NCBI GenBank assembly: GCA_002269645.1
Contig: NIVC01000052.1
Span: forward strand, 124,001 to 188,000
Length of the DNA stretch: 64,000 nt
Origin: Macrostomum lignano
Lineage: Eukaryota
Direction of reading: 5' to 3'
A program made the translations under genes and the position numbers. Within the stretch, counting starts at the first letter, position 1. Each line of letters opens with the position of its first letter. Positions 2,487 through 62,997 of the stretch are shown in pieces. The notes beneath the pieces were generated by a model that saw only the letters and a program-made list of their open reading frames with translations, searched no databases and was not told the DNA's origin.

Positions 2487-4566
2487 ATGTCTCAAGTCGG
2501 TGGACGCAACCAGGAACGGATATCGGTACGTTGTAGAATCGTAAATGAGTCGTGAGAAAGTCGGCCAAAGGTCTAGCGTTAGCGCTTAACTTTCTACTAA
2601 CTCAGAGTGAATTGCGATTCTAATTCATGATTCATGATAAGTGACGCAGATGCGCTTTAGACGCAGCTCAGTTATTTACCTCGTAGTGACTTCAGCACGC
2701 CTCAGATCCAGCTCTACAGTCTCAGAGTCACTTGCGTCACGTCACGTAAGAGTCGTTTCAGAGTCAAAAACAATAAAACACCCGACTCTTTGACGAATTT
2801 TTGGCGACTTGTACCGTGACATCTCATCGTTTTAGAGTCGTCTAGAGTCAAACTATTTCCTACTTCCTACTCTGGGACACGTCTTGGCCTGGGTACCGTT
2901 TTCATCGGGTCAGCAGTCAGTTTGTCAGTCAAATTTCGGACTCGGTCTCAAAACCTGTAGACTCAGTTATCCTTAATGACGCTCTTTGGTACTGTGCAGT
3001 AGGACTGTGTGAGACGATTGACAGAAAATTGATGGGCGAGTCACTGTTTAGACCCAACTTTAAATCAACTTTTAGGCCCGAGAACGCAGAAGTCTGAACG
3101 TTCTTCTCGTGGGGAAAACCGGCAGCGGCAAGAGCAGTCTCGGCAATGCGCTGCTGCGAGCTGGAGGGCGCCAGGAGGGCGCCGCCGCCGCTAACTTCGA
3201 CGCATTCGGCGTCAACCACTCGTTCTGCAGTTCCAGCGTCGACTGCGAGGTTGCCGAGGCGTCCGTGGAAGGAAGACAGCTGACCGTGGTAGACACACCG
3301 GGTACAATGGATTCCAACAACCGCGAGAGAGCGCTTCATGAGGTGGCCAATGCCATAGTTCATTGTCGCGAGGGGTTTCACGTAATTCTAATAATAATCC
3401 GTGTTGACTGTCGCTTCACTGATGAAGACAGAGCCGCTGTGGAACTTGTGACGCGCATGTTCGGTGAAGACTTCTACAAGCACTGCATAGTGGTGTTCAG
3501 CCACGGCGATGACATCGGCAATAGCGAAGAAGCGTTCGCCAGGCTCATCCACGAGGCCCGGAACGCAACCAAATTCCTAAACAGTCTTCTGAACCAATGC
3601 GGAAATCGCTTTGTCCTTGTAGACAATCATGGAAGCGTAGAGCACCTTCTTAGCAGGATGGACAGTCTGGTCCAGCAGAACAGAGGCGCGACCTTCACCA
3701 ACCGGTACTTTGCTGAGGCTAAGGAGGCGCTGCGTCAGCTGCGGCCTGCTCTGCAATCCGAAGAGCAGCAGCGTCGCGAAGAATTCAACAGGCTTGTGGA
3801 GAATGCGGGAAAGGACGAGCTGGTTCGACTGAGGAATGAACTGGAGCGGGACCTACAGCGGATTGGGGAGGCCGCGATGAAGAGAGCTGCAACTGATGTT
3901 GCTAATAGCGCCATTTTGAACGGTGACACCTGCTTCCCAAGCGACGCCACGGTCGTAACGCCCGATGGTCCAGTGCAGCTGCGCGACCTCCGGCTGGGCC
4001 AGCTGGTGCTTGGCAGGAAGGGCAGCTCAGGTAACCGCCTGGCATTTTCACCGGTCTACGCCTGGGGCCACCGGAACCCGGAGGTGGCGGACGCAACCTG
4101 GCTGTCGATTCGAACAGAATCTGGCGCGTGCCTCGCGCTGAGCCCCGGGCACCTGCTGCTTCTGGCCGAGACGGCAGAGAGTGCGGCTTGTGCACCGCGC
4201 GCTGCTCCCGCCAGCCAGCTGCGTGCCGGACAATCCTCTCTGTGGACGATGGGACCAGGTGGACTCCGAAGAGACCTCGTTGTGTGTGTTCAACAAGCCA
4301 GCAGCAGAAGCCACCGCGGCATCTACGCACCGTTCACCCTGAGCGGCAGTCTACTGGTTGACGGCGTGCTGGCATCCTGCTACGTCGACTGCGGCCCGCT
4401 GACCGCGCCGCAGATGCACGCCCTCCTGGCTCCGGTGCGAGCAGCCTGGCGCGTCTGGCCAGCCGGCATGGCAGCCGTTGGCTGCCCTCAGCCCGGCAGT
4501 GGCGGCGGCATGCCCTGCTGGGTCCGACTGGCAGCAAAGCTCACCCGAGCTCTGTCTGAGGCATGA
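2487..4566 (+). CDS. AIG1/GIMAP-family GTPase fused to a Hedgehog-type Hint (Hog) autoprocessing domain; 2 exons (2487-2525, 3076-4566), about 509 aa
   Basis: Exon 2 follows a ttttag acceptor (3075) and reads ARERRSLNVLLVGKTGSGKS (G1), DTPG (G3), FHVILIIIRVDCRFTDED (AIG1 conserved box with the RFT arginine), SHGD (G4), then a coiled-coil-like stretch. It continues NGDT-CFPSDATVVTPDG (Hint block A, Cys codon 3931), LALSPGHL (block B), GIYAPFTLSGSLLVDGVLASCY (Hedgehog-like Hint C-terminus) and an SRR-like tail. Putative exon 1 is MSQVGGRNQERIS with a phase-0 GTACGT donor at 2526 (less certain). AATAAA at 4747-4752. Confidence 0.9.
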
Positions 4567-4957
4567 AGGCCATTCAACGTTATTCTGTTTCCCGCCAGAC
4601 TCTTGCTGAAAGAGGCGTTCTAGCTCTTGCAGCTTGTTAAAAGCAACTCTCTGATCTATGCATGCGGTATGTCATATCCTTAGATTGCATCACCCAAATT
4701 GGGACAAGTACGCTCGTACTCTACTTTCAGTAGCCACATTTTTCTAAATAAATGACTAAAATTCTGAGAATTGGACAAGCAATTACATGCGGCAATGTGG
4801 CTTCTTTTCACGTCACTGAATACTCGAAATGTTTGCGACAAGGACTACTAGAAGTACTTAGGTTCACTATTTTAACTTCAATTTCGTGTCTTAAAGCTAG
4901 ATAGTCAGTCTGCTGCCTTTTGGACCATTTCTCACCTTTCGAACATCCAAATACCAC

Positions 4958-5432
4958 TTTGAGCTGCCACCTCAGACCAAATACCACTTTGAGATGCCAC
5001 CTCAGACAAAATCCCAACCTTGAGATGCCACCTCAGACCAAATACCACTTTGAGATGCCACCTCAGACAAAATACCACCTTGAGATGCCACCTCAGACAA
5101 AATCCCACTTTGAGATGCCACCTCAGACAAAATACCAACTTGAGATGCCACCTCAGACCAAATCCCACTTTGAGATGCCACCTCAGACAAAATACCAACT
5201 TGAGATGCCACCTCAGACCAAATCCCACTTTGAGATGCCACCTCAGACAAAATACCAACTTGAGATGCCACCTCAGACCAAATCCCACTTTGAGATGCCA
5301 CCTCAGACAAAATACCAACTTGAGATGCCACCTCAGACCAAATACCACCTTGAGATGCCACCTCAGACCAAATGCCACTTGAGATACCACCCCAAACCTA
5401 GTACCACACTGAGATACCACCTCAGACCAAAC
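4958..5432. repeat. 30-bp minisatellite with an alternating 60-bp dimer
   Basis: CCACTTTGAGATGCCACCTCAGACAAAATA-type units; lines 5101-5340 repeat with period 60. Confidence 0.95.
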
Positions 5433-5849
5433 GCATACCAGCTTCAAAAATATTCGAAAATCATAAAGGCGAAAATATAGACAATTTAGAGGCTGAAAAC
5501 TTAAAAGTAATTATTTCGTTAAATGAAATAAACAATCGTTATGTTCAATCCCATGTGCAGTCAAAATGTAGCTGTTCGATTTTGGAAAAACAAAATTGAA
5601 ATACGCGTTTATGCTTGAGTCATTTTTTTTAAACTGCATAAGCACTGCTCGCAATCAGTTTGATTAATCCAATTTGGCGGCAATTTTTTATGAAGGAAAC
5701 ACAATTTTTATCATTTTAATTGTTATCGTTCTATTTTTGTTTTTGATTGAAATCTGCTGCAGTTGCCGCCGTCTGAGTAAAGCATTAGAAAGCAGGCTTC
5801 ATCTCTTTCCTCCGACTGGCTTCAACCGACTGACTGTGTGGAATTGCAG

Positions 5850-6619
5850 TCACATCTGTAGCAAGTGTAGCATTTCAGTGACATCTGTAGCAAGTGTAGC
5901 ATTGCAGTGACATCTGTAGCAAGTGTAGCATTGCAGTGACATCTGTAGCAAGTGTAGCATTGCAGTGACATCTGTAGCAAGTGTAGCATTGCAGTGACAT
6001 CTGTAGCATTGCAGTGACATCTGTAGCAAGTGTAGCATTGCAGTGACATCTGTAGCAAGTGTAGCATTGCAGTGACATCTGTAGCATTGCAGTGACATCT
6101 GTAGCAAGTGTAGCATTGCAGTGACATCTGTAGCAAGTGTAGCATTGCAGTGACATCTGTAGCAAGTGTAGCATTGCAGTGACATCTGTAGCATTGCAGT
6201 GACATCTGTAGCATTGCAGTGACATCTGTAGCATTGCAGTGACATCTGTAGCATTGCAGTGACATCTGTAGCATTGCAGTGACATCTGTAGCAAGTGTAG
6301 CATTGCAGTGACATCTGTAGCATTGCAGTGACATCTGTAGCATTGCAGTGACATCTGTAGCAAGTGTAGCATTGCAGTGACATCTGTAGCATTGCAGTGA
6401 CATCTGTAGCATTGCAGTGACATCTGTAGCATTGCAGTGACATCTGTAGCATTGCAGTGACATCTGTAGCATTGCAGTGACATCTGTAGCAAGTGTAGCA
6501 TTGCAGTGACATCTGTAGCATTGCAGTGACATCTGTAGCATTGCAGTGACATCTGTAGCATTGCAGTGACATCTGTAGCATTGCAGTGACATCTGTAGCA
6601 TTGCAGTGACATCTGTAGC
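5850..6619. repeat. 20/29-bp minisatellite (GCATTGCAGTGACATCTGTA, with or without GCAAGTGTA)
   Basis: Read directly. Confidence 0.95.
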
Positions 6620-6984
6620 TCTAAGAAACGTTGACCACTGGCTACGGGTCAAGGTAGCGGAGATCCAGGGAGCCTTCTTCCCGTCCCGCGCTCACAACAC
6701 ATTCGTAGTGTGGAATCACAGAGAAGACATCTGTCACGCGGATGGTCAGCAGGTCTAGTCTCAGCATTCTTATCGAAAAAGATACCCAAAATTACGTTGA
6801 GCTGTACGTAATTTATTGCACATTTGGCTAAAGCGAGTTTAACGACCTAAATAATAACTCTCTCTCTTCTACTAATAAGCTATGAACAGCATCAATGCTG
6901 AAAGCATCAGGCATGTCTAGATGCTGGTGGGGATACTTTTTCATCTAGTGAATAGTAATTTATCCGTCCATCATCCATTGGCCT

Positions 6985-8922
6985 TCAGTCCTTCAGCCAC
7001 CGAGTCCACTGGAGGGGATTCAGCACCTTCGAAGTGGTGGCAGCGGTGGGATCGCCTGTCAGAGCCTCTTCGCCACCAATCAGCTGGTCCAGGTCGTTAG
7101 AGCTGTGCATTACATAGACTGGGGAAATGTGAAACAGTTTGTAACGTACGATAAGAAGACAAGTTATCATTGTTATAGCAGCATCTCATGCAACAGCCAT
7201 CTGCTTACACTCTCTGCTATTTCCAATAACAGTTTCGAAAGCGCCCTTCACATCAGGTCCCTGCTGTTGCAGCTGTTGAACCGATTTAAGAAATCGTTTC
7301 CTAGCGTCCTCCTGTGCCAGTCCTTGATAGTTGACTGCGAGCACTTTGTAGAAATCTGCAGTCAGTTCGGGTGGCATTTCGTCGGTTAACAATGCATTTT
7401 ATATATAAATTTAAAAGTTATTGCGCAGCGCATCTGAAGGCTGCGTACAGCTGTTCAGTCCAAGGACTGGGGGGGGGGTCGCCACACACCCTCAATTACC
7501 CCAGCTAATGTTGGCACCCATTTTACAGCTGGGTGAACTGAAGCAATGCAGAGTTGAGTGTCTTGCTCAAGGACACAAATTGTTCCTAGTGGGTCGAGAT
7601 TCGAACCCCTGACCTTCAAGTCGTGAGTCCGACACTCTAACCACTAGGCTGCAACCCCCTCACTTGGCAACAACCCCTTCACTAGCTAAAACCCCCTCAC
7701 TAGGCTAAATATAAAAAATGATATAAACAAATCAGAACACACCTTGATCGTTCCACACGGACTTTATGTCACCTAGCAACGACTTGGCAACGCAGTTGTC
7801 TTGCTTTTCGAAAGCCGGCAACGCGAGCTTAAGAAATTTGTTGTTCCAATCTTGGTCGAGTGTCAGGGCGTCTCGAATAGCCTTTCTCGCCGTCAGGGAA
7901 TCTGAAACGATTTCATTCAGTGAAACTCGACGCAGGGATTTGCGTTTTGCTGCTTCGAAAAAAAATGAATTTTGAATCAAAGACCGATAAACAGAAATAT
8001 GAGAAATTCAAAAACGCATTAAAGAAAAGAGACAGTAAATGGACCCAAAATTAGTTGAAGGTGCTCAGCTTGCTATAGCAAAAATTTCCTAACAGAATCA
8101 ACCCCCTCCTGCAGTGGGTCATTGTGGAGACGCGGTTGCTTTGATCAAGCGGCCACAATGAAGCCCCATGCCGATTTTCGAGCTCAAACGTCAAATTTAT
8201 TTGACCGCGTACGAAATCGAACCCCAGGTACTTTGGAAAAACTGCTTCCAAAGTTTTCATATCAAGCTTTGCAACTTTCACAAGCATTGCGAAGTTTGTT
8301 TAGAATCGCTAAGATAGCTCGTATCAAGGCTCATGGAGGGTTATTGATGGAATTCTGTGACACAGGGGAAAGTACTGAGATGTCAAGGTTTATTTGAAAC
8401 TTGCTGGGATTGTCATGGCTCACGGGGGGGGTTGCTGAGATGCGAAGGGTCAATTGGGAGTTGTTGGTAGGTCAAGCATCAAAAGGGAGAGTTATTGGTA
8501 AAACATGGCTTAAAGGGAGGCTTTGATGTCAAGGATCATAGAGAATCTGATAGGCTTAGATAGCTGGCTTTCAGGGCTGATGCTTTTATGCTTTTAACAT
8601 CATTTTTCTTGAGAAACTAACAACAGATTGTACTTTTATTTTATTCAAAATATTTTATTCCTTTCTTTTTTGCCTCCCCGTTTGGGGGGCGCAGATGGCT
8701 AGTCGACTATACTAAAAATGAGAGCTCCTCACCGTACTCCCAGATGTGAAACACTTGGTTCAGAGAGCCCAGCTCGGCAGACCAGTAGCCAACGATGCGC
8801 GAGTGTCGGACGCGAACTCGGAACACCTCCTGGACCAGACTGCGCATCCTCGGCAGATCCTGAGCAGCGATCCGGTACGTGCGCAGCTCGTACAGCTTCC
8901 CGATGCTGCCTGTGAGCTTCAT
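6985..8922 (-). CDS. NIPSNAP: NIPSNAP-family protein, 4 exons (8733-8922, 7743-7901, 7209-7355, 6985-7118), about 209 aa; a further 5' exon is possible
   Basis: KLYELRTYRI...IVGYWSAELGSLNQVFHIWEY|DSLTARKAIRDAL..DQDWNNKFL matches the first NIPSNAP domain. FYKVLAV...GAFETVIGNSREFYVMH...KVLNPLQW matches the second. All three junctions are GT-AG, phase 1, and join to 630 nt without a frameshift. Confidence 0.85.
7420..7655 (-). mobile_element. tRNA-derived CORE-type SINE in NIPSNAP intron 2
   Basis: The minus strand reads GCAGCCTAGTGGTTAGAG (A box) ... GGTTCGAATC (B box, 7598-7607). It is followed by a segment whose plus strand, CCCATTTTACAGCTGGGTGAACTGAAGCAATGCAGAGTTGAGTGTCTTGCTCAAGGACACA, resembles the MIR/CORE consensus. 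The 3' boundary is approximate. Confidence 0.7.
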
Positions 8923-10135
8923 CGCTAAATGATTTTTCAGCAAAACAAACTGCTGTCAAGTAAAGCATTTCTCGCTTCTATTAGCCTAATAAACAGTAAT
9001 GCGCAGAAAGAGTGACTTGGCATGCAGGCCAACTGCTTGTTTGCCTGGCCAGCCACAGTGCTACAGCCCTTGGAGCGCTGCTAAGACAGATAAGACCGAA
9101 TAAATCGCCGGAAATCAGAACGAGCTGCATGCTATAGTGGATAGTAGTAGTTCAAGTGTGTGACAGCACTGCCAGGGCGATCTAGATTTAGAATCTGGGT
9201 TGGCGTTAGACAGGCAGTGGCTCTGGCCTACGAGCTCGAATTTTACATTTTCTGGATTTGTCCCAAGTCAAAGCTGCTGCAGACTTGGCGATCAACTGCA
9301 ATCAGACTCACAAATGACAAATTGACAATGGAAAACACGTCGAATTGAAGCTTTAAAACTATTCCCGTCCAGATGCTTATATCCAAGGTGTCCCCGGCCA
9401 GACCGGCCCTCGGAGCCTTCAAGCTGCCCGTGTTCAGAGATATGGTTTAGCGAGCGCTTATCAGGGCTGTTTGGTGTGCCATGGGCTTTTTCAACTATCA
9501 ACCGCTCAGTCGGGACACAAACAGTACGGTTAGTGACAGAAATTGCTCTGCAGATTCAACCCAAGCACTACCTTTAAATAAAAGCCTTTAAAAAATACAA
9601 CTAAAGCTAGCTGAGTCTGGCCTTAGATCAGCATTGCTCCCGCCAGTTGCATTGAAATATGATGGAGCAGGAAAATTAGGCAGCTGGAGAAAATATTGGA
9701 GTGACTATGAATGAGTGACGAAAAGCAGTCAGCCATCCATTTCAGTGCTTTCACCTGGGGAGGCTGAATTCGCTGACAAAAAGCAGGCAGGAGTGACGAC
9801 CAGAATGGATTGCGGGACCTGATCATGCCAGACTCGCGCCATTCTTCATCTCTTCTATCTCTCCCCTTGCGTTTCCCAAAAAGCTCCCCTCCAATCCAAT
9901 CCGCGCCCTGCACCGCTGCAGCAGCCTCCACCCCCCTACTTACTCAGTGGCGCGCATTTTAAACAGCTGAGGAGGCAGCTCCGCCTCCCGTCCCATCCGC
10001 CGCCTTCTCCCCATACACTCGGCTCTCGCCGCTCCGCTCTCCCATAGCTATCTCTAAATCCTAAACAGCAACAAACCAAGCCCGTCCTTTGTTTGGAGAA
10101 GCCAACGCAACGTTTTACTACGGCGGAAGTGTGTC

Positions 10136-32767
<22,632 letters not shown>

Positions 32768-57188: not shown

Positions 57189-60100
57189 TCAAGAGGACAC
57201 GAACTCCAGACTGTCAGGGTCCAAGGCCAGCAGCTGGCTCAGTTGCCAAGGCGATTTGGGGCCAGTCAGAGCCGGCGCGACCAGCTGGAATCCCGGCAGG
57301 CTGCCGCGGCTTCTCAGCTCGACCAGCTGCGACGAGCTCCAGCGATGCCGGGTGGCCAGACCTCGCGCCGCCGCTGTCGCTTCTCGTTGCCAGGCGACCA
57401 GTGATGCGGCGGTCAGCGCGTCGGACTGAAGCCGGGTGAGCTCGGCTGAGACTGACACTCCGTAACTAATGCTCAGGACGGAGTGCCGGCTCGACACCAA
57501 CAGGCGGTCGGAGCCATCAGAGCGGCTGATCGTCAGGGAGATGTCACCAGGCAACTCGAACCGGGATCTGGGATGGGGGTGGAAGACGGAAAATGAAAAA
57601 TGAACTTGTTACGAGCTATAATTGGGTAATTTAGACAAACCATCCTGAGATAGCCGACGTTAATAGCTATTTTTAGAATCTATTTTTAGTATATTAGACT
57701 AGCGCAGCCCCCTTGGGGTGGCCCGAACAAAGACTGAAATTCTTGTTGTACTCTGCCCCCCCCCCCTTTCTCGGCACGTTGATTTTAACTCCTGTGTACA
57801 TTGCATCATAGATGTACACTTACTCTCTAGATCTAGAGCAATCGATTACAGAGCTTTGAGCTCAAATATATAATAGCACCCCACGCCCAAGTCGGGGCCG
57901 TAAGCTTTTGGTTCATCTAAACTTCTGTCTCTCGCGTCAGTCACTACAATGCTATTTTTAATAGCGCTCTATCAAGTCTTTTTTAGAATTTTTTAGAGCT
58001 ATTTTTAGAATCTTTTTAGTACCCTCGTATATTAGACTAGAGCACTCCCCCTTGGGGTGGCCTGAACAAAAAAACGGAAAGGTATCTTATTTCATCAGCA
58101 TTTCATCACTATTTAAAAAAGGATAATAAGTAAATATCCAGTAGTAAGATTGCCATCGACTCATATTTGACTGGCTGATGCACATGTACGAAAATATGAT
58201 AACAATGACAGTTGCAAACGAGGGAAGTTGATGGAGAAGGTACAGTAAAACACAACCTAGATAGACATAGACGAAAAACATGATCTTTCTTATCGTCGGG
58301 CATGTTGACAGCTTTCAGTCAGGGCTATCTTGTAAATCGGTCTTCGTATTTGAAAACAAATGCCATTCTTCCAACCTGAGCACTAAAGCAGCTCCCATAC
58401 TCGCATAACTCCTCACCTTGTCAAATCAACAGAGCTGCCAAACACGGCCTGCAGGTGCGTGTTCATCAGGCCAGCCCGCTCAGGCCAGGCCAGGTGCACC
58501 ACCTGCTTGTCCCCGTCCAGTCCCGGGAACGGCACCAGCTCGGAGCCGTTGACCGCCGCCATGGCGAGCTGCTTCACCACCTGCGGCACCTGATCGCCGT
58601 GGAACTCCGGCACCGAGACTCGAATCCGAGGCCGCGATTCCGACCAGCCGTCGCCGTGACTTTCGCCGTAGTCGACGCTGAGCAGCAGCCCCGGATGGAG
58701 CGTCGGCCCCGTCGAGTTCAGCGCCAAGCCGCCGCCGCTGCCGCTGTCGATCTTCTCGATCATCGACAGTCGCTGGAAGGCGGCCAGGCTGTCCGCCAGC
58801 GCAGAGGACAGCACGGATGTCGGCGAATCCCGCAGACCAGCCAACGGGCTTGTCAGCGAGCTCCCTGCCGTCGAGTCCATCGCCGATACAATGGTCGCCG
58901 TCGAAGCTTCCGGACGAACGTTGAAGTTGGCCAGCCAGAAGTTTGGGCGGGACACCGCTAGCGAGTCGTAGGCGGCGTCGGCTTCACCAGCGAGATGGTC
59001 AAATGTCAGGCCGTCTAGATTGGTCAAGCCGAGAGGCGAGTCGCCGAGGCCGGCGTGCAGGCGGCGCGCCAAGCCGGAGTAGTCGGGGGCGGCCCATTGG
59101 CCGGTGAGGGGGTCGTACACCCGCTGCCCGGGCGGCAGCAGAACCAGCTGTGCGTCGGGGTCGTGGATGCCGCCGCGGTAGCCGAAGGGCAGCTGCGCGG
59201 TCTGCTTGGAGACGGTGAGCAGGCCGGTGTGCGAGTAGCTTAGCTGGTTCAGCGCGATGCCGCGGCTATCTAGAAGGGCCAGCGGCGAGCCCAGATGGTC
59301 GCACACAATGTAGGCCCGCTCTCCGTTGGTTTCCATAGCAACTAATTGACCGGTGCGATTCTCATAGACAAAGGTTGCCAGCCGGTTGCCATGCGGGAAG
59401 AAGGCGTGGCTGACTCGCCAAGGGCTGGCCGGATCGGCGTACATCAGCTGGAAGTCGCGGCTCCGGTCCAGCAGGTCCAGACGGGCGACCAGGCGGTCCC
59501 TGGAGTCGTACAGGTAGTGCAGGCTGTACACCTGCGTACCTCCGTCCGCCACGCAGTCAGCTCGCAGCAGCTGGCCTTTGGCGTTGAACCGGAAGTGCTC
59601 CGTGTGCCCTGGCAGCTTCCGGTTCCGGCGCCAGCTGAGGAAGCCGTCGGCGTCGAAGCCGAGCCCGACGCTACCAACCGACGTCGGCAGGCCGCGGCTG
59701 TCGTAGGTGTAGTTCAGCCACTCCGCCGCGGCCGGCGGAGGCGACTCAATTGAGCGGGCGGCGATTCGACCGTCGCCGCGGTAAATAATCCGTTGCCGAC
59801 TGGTAACCTGGCCGCGCTGGGCCTGGGTCAGCTGCGGTGGGTGTTGGGGATGTTGGGATTATGGAGAAATTGTGACTTTGGGGATGTTGGGATTAGGGGG
59901 ATATAAGGCTACTGGGGCTACTGGGGATATTGGGATAGTTGACATTATTGGGACATTAAGGATACTGGACATTGGGACAATGAAATACTGGGACTTCTGA
60001 TGCATAAAACATAGGAATTTGAGGATTTTTAGGGATTGTCGGATAAAAGAGTGATATTGGTGTTTGGTGTAACAATAGCAAATAAGTTAAACAATTCTAA

Positions 60101-62997
60101 GCAAAGGCTACTCACCTGCACAGGCCTGCCCAATCGGTCCTTGGCGTACTCCAGTGACACCTGAGCCTCATTTGCCAGGCCGTAGACCAGCCTCTCTGGC
60201 CGTCCCAGGCTGCAGCTGTGCAGCGACAGCACGAACGCCCTGGCATCGAAGCCGCTGCCCGGGCCGCTGGCGAAGTGCAGCGTGTTCTCCACCAGCCGGC
60301 CCATGCTGTCGAAGTGAAACCTGCGCATGGCCCTGCCGTCCTGCAGCGTGATTGTGTGCTTCATCCGGGACACCTCGTATTGGAAGCGGATGTCCAGCTG
60401 GCCTGTCACGTGACCCCTGACCGGATCCAGCGTCGTGTTTACAACGGTTCGAGCGGCGATGCTGCCGCCGCTGCCGCCAACAACGGTTTCTATGGACACT
60501 AATCGTAGCTCGGCGTCCAGGGTGTACCGATGATGGACAGGTGCGAGTCCGGACTCGGCTGTGGAGGCCAAGCCGCCAACAAGCTCAACACTCTCGCTCG
60601 CGAGGCAGCCGCCTCTGTAGTTGAACTGCTGGCGGACGGATGTTTCAGCGAGTTGGTCGGTGACCGCGGCCCTGTAGAGCAGTTTGGTGTCCGGATGGTA
60701 GCTGAACTCGGTCCTGGTCAGGCCGTGCACGCTGAGGGCGAGGCGGCGAGGCAGCTCGCCAGCTAAGAAGGAGTTCGCCAGGAGCCGCTGGCGGCTGGGG
60801 TAGGCGAGCGTGGTCAGAGTTTCAGCCGAGTCGAAATCGAACAGGGCGGCCCGGCCGCTCTGCCAAGGCCGGTAGTGCAGGCGGGTGCCGCCAACGATGC
60901 TCTGCGACAGCACCGACTGCCGGACGCCCTCCGGCGAGGTGACGCCACCAAAATTGCCGTTGGCGTTGAGGTGGAAGGTGTGCAGATTGCCTAGCGGATC
61001 CGTGACGGTGTTGGGCTGCGGGGACAGGCATGGGTGGAGCAGTTTGTAAAGGTTGGTTGGCGTGTTTGGGGTGTTTGAGGTGTTTGGGGTTGGTTGGCGT
61101 GTTTGGGGTTGGTTGGTGTGTTTGGGGTGTTTGAGGTGTTTGGGGTTGGTTGGCGTGTTTGGGGTTGGTTGGTGTGTTTGGGGTTGGTTGGTGTGTTTGG
61201 GTTTGGTTGGTGTGTTTGGGGTGTTTGAGGTGTTTGGGTTTGGTTGGCGTGTTTGGGGTGTTTGAGGTTTTTGGGGTTGGTTGGCGGGTTTGGGGTTGGT
61301 TGTCGGGTTTGAGGTTGGTGTGTTTGGCATGTTTTTGGACTAGAAAGTGCTTTGGTGATTGGAATTTAGAAATTAGTTTAGCCACGTATTTCATGGCCTC
61401 TAAACCAAACCAAACAATGGTCTCGTTCTGAGCAAGTACTATAAGAAATTTTTCCCTTTTGTTTTTCGCTCGGTGACAGAGAGCATGACTTACGAGTAAC
61501 TGCAACCTCACGAGAAGCCGAGGTTTCAACGTAAAATGAAGATTGTGAAAAATAGCGACTGGCCCAAAACTTATCCATGGGATAAAGCTAGTTAGTTGCA
61601 TTTCATCTTATCCTATTTCATCCTTTCCCACAGCAGCCTCACCCGGGCCCCCAGTTTTTTTCCCAGCTCTCCTTTCCACAGTTCCGCATTGATTGACACG
61701 AAGTCGTTCTGCTGGAAAATTGAACCGAGCTGAGTTCGCAGTGCAGCTATTAGTTCTCACCCCTTCCCGAAGTCTGTCGCCATGCCATGACCCTGGCGGC
61801 TTCAGTGATGCATGACTGCCAGCCCAATGCAACCCCGTTTTTTTCATTTTTTCTTTCTTTTTTGGTCAAACATCGCGTTATTTCCTTGAATCTACTAGTG
61901 TGAAAAATACTCGATTCGGAAACATTCCCAAATGCCCGAACTCGCAATTAACTTCAGCCGTGATTAGTAGAGAGAGGCGACCAACTGCGGTTGCTAAGCT
62001 GACCATAAACAATAGAGTAATTGACCCATCACATGATCACGTGATCTGTTCTTGTGTGCAAATTAGACCCGAGAAATAATGCTCGAATAAGTTTTAGTAA
62101 TTTACTAGATATATTTTGCTTATTGGACTTACCAGCGTTGTTGAATTGTCTGAGTAGCTGTATCGATAAACAGCCAGCTCATTCGCCGCTTCGCTGTCCG
62201 AGAATTGACGAATCTCGGACACCAGACGGCCCAGCGAGTCGTATTGCCACTGGTAAGTACCTCTCTCGATGTTGCTCTCCGATGCTGTGCGTGGCTTGTC
62301 GGCCCATTGCATCAGGGCAATTCGGCCGCGACTAAGGAGAGAGTTTAAATTTGATTCTTTGGTAGAATTGCTTTGTTTTTTGATAACAAGTTTAATTGTT
62401 TTATTCGTGTCTATAATATAACGTGTACTAAGGAGTCTATGTGGGTGTACATTTTGAGGTTCCCTCTAAAAGAATGTACATTGTAAAAAAGGGAGTGTGG
62501 GAGCTGAGGGTTAGACGGGTTGGAATTTTATAGTCAAAGTACGAGCGTATATTGGATTAATAAACTTTACGCCCCTGTTACACTAAGCAAATAAATTTAC
62601 ATTGTTATATAAATAGCAACAGGGGTTTGTGGCTCTAAAAAGCATGTACATTTTAAAAAGGGAGAGCGGGCTGAGGGTTAGACGGGTTAGAATTCTAGAG
62701 TCAATCAATAAACTTTGCCCCCCCCCCGACTGTGTACACTAGGCAAAATAAATGTACATTGTTCTATAAATAGCAACACGGGTTTCGGGCTAACCTAGTG
62801 TAGTCAAACCGCACAGGCCTGTACAGACAGATTCGCTGATTGGGCACAATAGAAATCGGATTTCCGTCTCGATTGTAGGTTATGGAGAACAGCTGCTGTT
62901 GGTCACTCTCGGATTGTGTTCCGTTGTCCGAGACACTGTAGATCTCAGTTAGATTGTTGCGATCAAACGCGACCGAGATAACTGAGCGGCCATTGAT
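57189..62997 (-). CDS. TENM: Teneurin, C-terminal part (YD-repeat shell plus Tox-GHH-like tail); 5' exons lie beyond the window or were not resolved
   Basis: Exons 62795-62997, 62133-62331, 60116-61015, 58417-59831 and 57189-57567 splice in consistent phase. INGRSVISVAFDR; YLYDSRDRL; YIVCDHLGSPLALLD; PFGYRGGIHDPDAQLV; RVYDPLTGQW (RHS-core-like); terminal AWQRE...RWSSSQLVELRSRGSLPGF resembles the teneurin Tox-GHH/TCAP region. Confidence 0.88.
61050..61325. repeat. GGTTGGCGTGTTTGG-type repeat in a teneurin intron
   Basis: Reverse complement of the 30802-31680 unit. Confidence 0.9.

Follow-up and report, generated by a model that had tools for sequence, protein, structure and literature searches.

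We analysed a 64,000-nucleotide window of the Macrostomum lignano genome (assembly GCA_002269645.1, contig NIVC01000052.1, positions 124,001 to 188,000 of the forward strand; "the window" hereafter means this whole stretch) and focused on the gene Mlig016153, whose two coding exons lie at window positions 2487-4566 on the + strand and encode a protein of 509 amino acids (aa). This protein joins a GTPase domain of the AIG1/GIMAP family to a Hedgehog-type Hog module, i.e. a Hint domain followed by a tail resembling the sterol-recognition region (SRR) of Hedgehog. Mlig016153 is a further member, in a new phylum (Platyhelminthes), of the already known AIG1-Hog family. Its features are as follows (window coordinates):

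2487..2525, + strand: coding exon 1 (13 codons, MSQVGGRNQERIS), followed by a GTACGT donor; needed to reproduce the deposited 509-aa protein
2526..3075, + strand: intron of 550 nt, with TTTTAG at its 3' end
3076..4566, + strand: coding exon 2, aa 14-509 plus TGA, a single open reading frame (ORF) of 1491 nt
3094..3741, + strand: AIG1/GIMAP GTPase domain, aa 20-235 (Pfam AIG1 (PF04548), GIMAP7 alignment, Foldseek)
3703..3921, + strand: two long helices, aa 223-254 and 259-295, a GIMAP-type C-terminal helical or coiled-coil-like extension (secondary structure of the AlphaFold2 (AF2) model)
3931..4395, + strand: Hint domain, aa 299-453 (Pfam Hint, PDB alignments, Foldseek, residue table)
3931..3933, + strand: TGC codon of Cys299, the predicted nucleophile, aligned to Cys1 of the C-terminal domain of Drosophila Hedgehog (Hh-C); the predicted scissile bond is Thr298-Cys299
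4396..4563, + strand: tail resembling the SRR or adduct recognition region (ARR), aa 454-509 (alignment to the Sonic hedgehog (SHH) SRR, AF2 helices, cross-phylum conservation)
4747..4752, + strand: AATAAA, candidate polyadenylation signal read from the sequence, about 180 nt past the stop codon

Gene structure of Mlig016153

The spliced coding sequence (1530 nt, 2487-2525 joined to 3076-4566) gives a product that is 100 % identical, over its full length, to the deposited proteins PAA86822.1/PAA92397.1 (hypothetical protein BOX15_Mlig016153g1/g2, Macrostomum lignano). The 2525/3076 splice proposed in the initial annotation is therefore that of the deposited annotation. The window matches contig NIVC01000052.1 at 100 % identity over the 14.5 kb that were compared. 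Exon 2 cannot be extended upstream, since the TAG that ends the intron is an in-frame stop. A very short first coding exon was also found in the paralogue Mlig029920, described below. The 35-nt spliced leader of M. lignano has ATG as its 3' end (PMC8629364), and trans-splicing onto the 3075/3076 acceptor would be in frame, yielding a protein of 497 aa that starts M+ARERR. As the domains are the same under either start, the conclusion that two modules are fused is independent of the exact N-terminus. The AIG1-Hint junction itself sits within one continuous ORF, with neither a stop nor a frameshift, so that joining both halves requires no splice prediction. A tblastn search across the 64-kb window revealed no second copy or fragment of the gene.

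Domains and catalytic residues of the protein

The first half of the protein matches the Pfam AIG1 profile (PF04548) at 1.5e-39 (136 bits vs a cutoff of 27) over profile positions 1-208 of 212. It contains the P-loop GKTGSGKS (aa 26-33; 3112-3135), DTPG (aa 86-89), RFT at 126 and the AIG1 conserved box ILIIIRVDCRFTDED, which includes Arg125; the latter aligns with R103 of GIMAP7, which the GIMAP7 structure paper is reported to identify as the catalytic arginine finger. SHGD (aa 155-158) is the G4 equivalent and aligns with THKE/TRKE of GIMAP5/7. By sequence, the nearest relatives of known structure are GIMAP7, 5, 4, 2 and 1 (E 6e-24 for GIMAP7, the alignment of which reaches aa 262), and a Foldseek search with the AF2 model retrieved GIMAP7 (3ZJC, E 5e-16 over about 290 columns) and GIMAP2 (3P1J, TM-score 0.86). 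The helical extension, 37.5 % of whose residues are charged, runs up to the predicted cleavage site. The profile score, the G motifs together with the conserved box, and the GIMAP fold with its helical extension all place this half among the AIG1/GIMAP (IAN) GTPases. With vertebrate GIMAPs (GIMAP7, GIMAP2, GIMAP5) it shares the P-loop, DTPG, the conserved box, the R103-aligned Arg and C-terminal helices after the G domain, at an identity of about 25-28 %; unlike the M. lignano protein, however, these are soluble or anchored at their C-terminus by a transmembrane (TM) segment, and none has a Hint domain.

The second half matches Pfam Hint (PF01079) at 1.5e-27 over aa 290-453 (97 bits vs a gathering score of 29.7). 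SHH and Drosophila Hh-C are its closest solved relatives by sequence, and Foldseek aligned the model to Hh-C (1AT0, TM-score 0.91, root-mean-square deviation 1.7 Å) and to the Hh-C D46H mutant (6TYY, TM-score 0.90). The AF2 model, built on an alignment of 24 sequences (mean pLDDT, i.e. predicted local distance difference test, 82.8; pTM, i.e. predicted TM-score, 0.69), consists of the G domain, the helices 223-254 and 259-295, Hint beta-structure (300-450), a kinked helix (457-481), a Gly-rich loop and an amphipathic helix (494-508), with lower confidence at the junction (about 291-300). A Pfam scan of the 509-aa protein found no Hedge domain (PF01085). A GIMAP/AIG1 GTPase and a Hedgehog-type Hint in one uninterrupted exon, as the initial annotation had proposed, are thus borne out by profile and fold matches alike, and every motif and number given there was correct (GKTGSGKS, DTPG, RFT, SHGD, NGDT|CFPSDA, SPGH; 509, 298 and 211 aa).

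The residues on which Hedgehog autoprocessing depends all have counterparts in this Hint domain. The sequence around the predicted cleavage site is NGDT|CFPSDA, in which Cys299, the first residue after the bar, occupies a position that is invariant in nine AIG1-linked Hog domains. Ser369-Pro-Gly-His372 (4141-4152; LSPGH, aa 368-372) aligns with T69-x-x-H72 of Hh, Ser replacing Thr, and Cys448 (4378-4380; motif GIYAPFTLSGSLLVDGVLASCY, ending at 449) aligns with C143 of the SCY motif. At the general-base position, Asp46 of Hh (D303 in Drosophila numbering), the protein has His345 (4069-4071) instead of Asp. The Hog module, which had been described as complete, has the Hint fold, Cys299, Ser369/His372, Cys448 and an SRR-like tail; His345 stands in place of the Hedgehog Asp46.

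This substitution is shared by all ten AIG1-linked and the other compared non-Hedgehog Hog domains, Asp being found only in true Hedgehogs, and the Drosophila D303H (D46H) mutant keeps its structure and cholesterolysis, with a broader sterol tolerance (PMC9163320). For both reasons, the change from Asp to His is, as far as the alignments indicate, no sign of decay; it argues against a Hedgehog proper, not against Hog activity. By analogy with the mutant, a His at this position appears compatible with sterol transfer. The residue preceding the Cys is Thr in this protein and varies over the family (T, K, G, Q, A, D, E). Cleavage before Cys299 would give fragments of 298 aa (33.1 kDa) and 211 aa (22.0 kDa).

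The tail beyond the Hint fold starts with HALLAPVR (aa 461-468), i.e. an H461-x3-(A)P466-x-R468 motif that aligns with the start of the SHH SRR (AHRAFAPFR), and contains GMPCW at aa 491-495. Its two helices are both amphipathic (hydrophobic moments of 0.89 and 1.21). No variation at H461, L464, P466, R468 or P493 was seen among the AIG1-Hog proteins of the flatworm and the molluscs. The Hedgehog SRR is an amphipathic, membrane-associating helix-loop-helix (PMC7242414), and the AF2 model predicts the same layout for the tail of Mlig016153. A simple hydropathy scan detected neither a signal peptide nor a TM helix (no 19-residue window above 1.55 on the Kyte-Doolittle scale, hydrophilic N-terminus), in agreement with the initial annotation as regards the signal peptide.

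Compared with Hedgehog (Hedge + Hog), the protein thus has a homologous C-terminal Hog module, with Cys1, TXXH and SCY kept and the same SRR start, but lacks the Hedge domain and the signal peptide, has His for Asp and Thr for the Gly before the Cys, and carries as cargo a GTPase, cytosolic by prediction, in place of a secreted morphogen. We also considered an intein, i.e. protein splicing, and rejected it: the protein ends 56 aa past the Hint fold, in the SRR-like tail, and has no C-extein, so that the term "protein splicing" used in the coral paper (PMC3723955) does not apply.

Copies, relatives and surroundings of the gene

The assembly contains three copies of Mlig016153, two identical and one about 1 % diverged. 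M. lignano is described as a hidden polyploid (PMC10468722), which would account for the three copies. In g1 and g2 the gene, the intron and the near flanks are identical, and this comparison is uninformative on selection. The third copy, g3 (PAA81348.1, contig NIVC01000536.1), has 21 differences over 2080 positions and no indel: five substitutions fall in the intron, and the coding changes comprise 11 synonymous and four non-synonymous codons (E255A, G277E, S302G, G371R). The ratio of non-synonymous to synonymous substitution rates (dN/dS, NG86 method) is 0.11 between g3 and the window gene, and both halves are constrained. Judging from these substitutions, Mlig016153 is an intact, selectively maintained gene under purifying selection. 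Outside the gene, g3 and the window show 53 differences in the 476 bp upstream of the ATG (ungapped) vs 6 in 380 bp downstream.

The paralogue Mlig029920 encodes a protein of 499 aa that is 38 % identical to the Mlig016153 product and agrees with it in AIG1-Hog architecture and in the catalytic residues. The gene lies at positions 6001-9293 of our locus L001 (contig NIVC01000184.1) and has four coding exons, one of its introns being located 3-4 codons before the nucleophilic Cys; both of its internal introns are absent from Mlig016153. Such a layout fits, as one reading of the two gene structures, a fusion by exon joining followed by intron loss in Mlig016153.

These data also bear on whether the fusion could be an artefact, i.e. 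neighbouring GIMAP and Hog genes wrongly merged, or the locus a dead pseudogene. The short exon 1 is a prediction and satellites flank the region, both of which would suit such an explanation. Yet the junction lies in a single 1491-nt ORF that is present in three genomic copies, which makes misassembly very unlikely; the low dN/dS and the recurrence of the architecture in a paralogue as divergent as Mlig029920, in many molluscs, in corals and in fungi likewise speak against it, and we give an artefact hardly any credence.

To assess the distribution of the architecture, 1.84 billion representative proteins were searched exhaustively with HMMER; a local phmmer search, in which the Hog half served as query, and a name look-up came next. 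The mollusc census was drawn from the best 150 of 9084 matches, and the true distribution is wider than listed here. Word-indexed searches with the full protein, the Hog half and the Hog alignment returned 6, 2 and 6 matches, respectively, and are a poor census of this architecture. At least eight mollusc proteins have the AIG1-Hog architecture and the catalytic residues; the hosts listed include Haliotis cracherodii, Haliotis rufescens, Potamilus streckersoni (two proteins), Physella acuta, Bradybaena similaris and Gigantopelta aegis, and one of the H. rufescens proteins is annotated "immune-associated nucleotide-binding protein 6-like". An uninterrupted AIG1-Hog ORF of 586 aa was also found on a snail contig from Logan; this contig was checked for a poly(A) tail and has none.

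The length of the spacer between the two domains is very variable: in XP_046377533.2 of H. rufescens (1416 aa, annotated "coiled-coil domain-containing protein 18-like"), AIG1 occupies aa 165-423 and Hog aa 1202-1375, with about 780 residues between them. In a cluster of Hog-domain proteins from metagenomes (P0006 and its relatives, 429 aa), both ends are hydrophobic and the middle region is rich in Cys, and Ala takes the place of the SCY cysteine (Hh C143).

Alignment of nine Hog domains revealed 23 invariant positions, including all the catalytic residues and five in the SRR-like tail. The two M. lignano paralogues and eight mollusc AIG1-Hog proteins all have Cys1, the His at D46, S/T-x-x-H and SCY. 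This bears on the idea that the Hog half does not cleave at all and serves instead as a permanent C-terminal module of the GTPase, for sterol or lipid binding, membrane targeting or protein interaction. GIMAPs often need a C-terminal membrane-targeting element, as in GIMAP1/2/5, and the amphipathic character of the SRR-like helices would suit that function. However, Cys1, the His at D46, the TXXH His and the SCY Cys do not vary over about ten proteins with an overall identity of only 29-41 %. This pattern is typical of a catalytic function that has been retained, not of a mere scaffold, and we regard a non-cleaving Hog as improbable.

In a neighbour-joining tree that covered the flatworm and mollusc members, six mollusc members grouped together (bootstrap 100) and the two flatworm members paired (74), but the tree did not resolve whether both groups form one clade; the AIG1 halves were not distinctly nearer to one another than to ordinary AIG1 proteins. 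As judged from these sequences, the tree leaves a single vs a repeated origin of the flatworm and mollusc fusions undecided.

The initial annotation knew of no described example of the combination, but it has in fact been reported in a fungus, corals and snails and is annotated in databases, the protein collection already listing PF04548+PF01079 for this very M. lignano protein. GmGIN1 of the mycorrhizal fungus Glomus mosseae (Requena 2002) consists of an AIG1/IAN GTPase and a bona fide Hog, without signal peptide (PMC2362128, Bürglin 2008); several AIG1-Hog transcripts are known from Rhizophagus irregularis (PMC6956056), four AIG1+Hint proteins were reported in Acropora in 2013 (PMC3723955) and one AIG1+Hint gene in Biomphalaria in 2020 (PMC7053062). 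Neither cleavage nor an adduct is tested in any of these papers, and searches for GIN1 biochemistry and for non-Hedgehog sterylation found nothing relevant among the searchable papers.

Like GIN1, the M. lignano protein has AIG1 N-terminal to Hog in one polypeptide and, by hydropathy, no signal peptide. GmGIN1 (Glomus/Funneliformis mosseae) and its Rhizophagus relatives resemble it in their AIG1/IAN-like GTPase, their Hog (Hint plus motifs J, K and L) and their presumed intracellular location; GmGIN1 differs in being fungal, and the likeness is to its published description, not to its sequence. The coral and mollusc proteins (Acropora millepora, Biomphalaria glabrata, Haliotis and others) share the domain order, the catalytic set with His at Asp46 and the SRR-like motifs, but many mollusc members (804-1416 aa) have additional sequence at the N-terminus, or about 780 aa of coiled coil separating AIG1 from Hog, whereas Mlig016153 is minimal at 509 aa. 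Nematode Hog proteins (Warthog, Groundhog, Quahog) and protist Hogs also have Hog on a non-Hedge N-terminal cargo (PMC2362128); these proteins, however, are secreted and Cys-rich, with signal peptides, in contrast to the enzymatic cargo and predicted cytosolic location of the M. lignano protein.

Around the gene, the window contains the following further features:

217-2010: 11-bp satellite GAATAGATACA, about 172 copies, GC content about 29 %, ending about 480 bp upstream of the Mlig016153 ATG
4947-5431 and 5836-6619: tandem arrays just downstream of Mlig016153, with 30/60-bp and 20/29/109-bp units
~6985-8922, - strand: gene for a NIPSNAP-domain protein of 209 aa (called on locus L003 at 14499-16436, converted to window coordinates)
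10440-11404: G-rich 9-bp microsatellite (CTGGGGTGG), about 110 copies, with a strong GC skew; it could form G-quadruplexes
24437-25405, - strand: ORF with a bHLH DNA-binding domain (Pfam HLH 3.6e-19)
57189-61330, - strand: 3' part of a teneurin-like gene (Teneurin YD-shell 1.5e-18, RHS core and repeats weakly, C-terminal Tox-GHH 9.7e-09)

Length variation in the arrays downstream of Mlig016153 accounts for most differences between the two near-identical contigs. The domain set at 57189-61330 is ordinary teneurin architecture, and an LRAT-domain gene is located shortly before the first position of the window. The GC content of the Mlig016153 ORF (61 % vs 31-45 % in its flanks) led us to consider contamination or horizontal transfer. 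This was rejected because the gene has a spliceosomal intron, lies on an 883-kb contig beside ordinary metazoan genes (NIPSNAP, LRAT, bHLH and teneurin), and has an intron-bearing paralogue.

Predicted self-cleavage and possible lipidation

The conserved catalytic set supports self-cleavage of the protein. From sequence and model, we consider that it probably cleaves itself in the cytosol at the Thr298-Cys299 bond via a thioester, possibly attaching a sterol or another lipid to the GTPase as a membrane anchor; our confidence is higher for the cleavage itself than for the adduct. Three steps can be envisaged. First, Hint would turn the Thr298-Cys299 peptide bond into a thioester by an N-to-S acyl shift at Cys299. 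Ser369/His372 would assist in this shift; His345 occupies the general-base position, and Cys448 is the second of the conserved cysteines. Second, the amphipathic SRR-like helices would bring the precursor to a membrane, on its cytosolic side, and supply a nucleophile with a hydroxyl group, for which a sterol is the most plausible candidate. Third, resolution of the thioester would release the 22-kDa Hog fragment and the 33-kDa GTPase, the latter being lipid-esterified, or simply freed if water or a thiol attacks. A lipid adduct would stand in for the C-terminal hydrophobic anchors of GIMAP1/2/5.

Several observations weigh against this proposal. Positions 165-213 of the Pfam Hint profile, which make up its SRR portion, are unmatched and the loop 482-493 is modelled at low confidence, so that sterol specificity is not supported by sequence alone. 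Thr occupies the place of Hedgehog's invariant Gly before the Cys, and the kinetics of cleavage may differ accordingly. The usual site of Hedgehog cholesterolysis is the secretory pathway, and no demonstration of cytosolic cholesterolysis was found in the searchable literature, where the gene identifiers of Mlig016153 likewise returned nothing relevant.

The outcome would be different if the thioester were always resolved by water or a cellular thiol. The GTPase would then gain no lipid adduct and would be freed from a membrane-docking or auto-inhibitory C-terminal module, in a one-shot maturation or activation switch. The conserved catalytic residues, the variable residue before the Cys and the unmatched SRR half of the profile agree with it, and sterol addition is unclear for nematode Hog proteins too, hence the name "adduct recognition region" given by Bürglin (PMC2362128). 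On the other hand, the tail that follows the Hint fold keeps the H-x3-AP-x-R start of the SRR, and five of its positions are the same in the flatworm and the molluscs, which would be hard to explain if the Hint fold alone mattered, and Drosophila Hh-C with His at the general base still supports sterol transfer. We therefore consider purely hydrolytic self-cleavage rather unlikely.

Returning to self-cleavage with a possible lipid adduct, a broader proposition would be that AIG1-Hog proteins in general esterify a sterol or another lipid in the cytosol, giving a lipid-anchored, immunity-type GTPase by a mechanism that glomeromycete fungi, cnidarians, molluscs and flatworms would all have kept; we put this forward tentatively, as possible rather than probable, and any immune role of the M. 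lignano protein would likewise be conjectural. If true, protein sterylation would for the first time be known beyond the Hedgehog ligands, and for the first time from the cytosolic side of a membrane. Covalent cholesterol ligation is usually given as unique to Hedgehog ligands (PMC7242414).

As a genome observation, Mlig016153 does no more than extend an architecture known from papers and databases to one further phylum. M. lignano has been described as a model in which transgenesis and phenotype screening by knock-down are possible (PMC8629364), and the compact, almost single-exon copy of 509 aa in such a species is a convenient entry point. AIG1-Hog proteins keep the whole catalytic apparatus on a GTPase, predicted to be cytosolic, whose family has been linked to immunity and to cell survival. 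Should they be self-cleaving and lipidating, they would represent a second, intracellular use of Hedgehog chemistry and a new route for the anchoring of GTPases to membranes.

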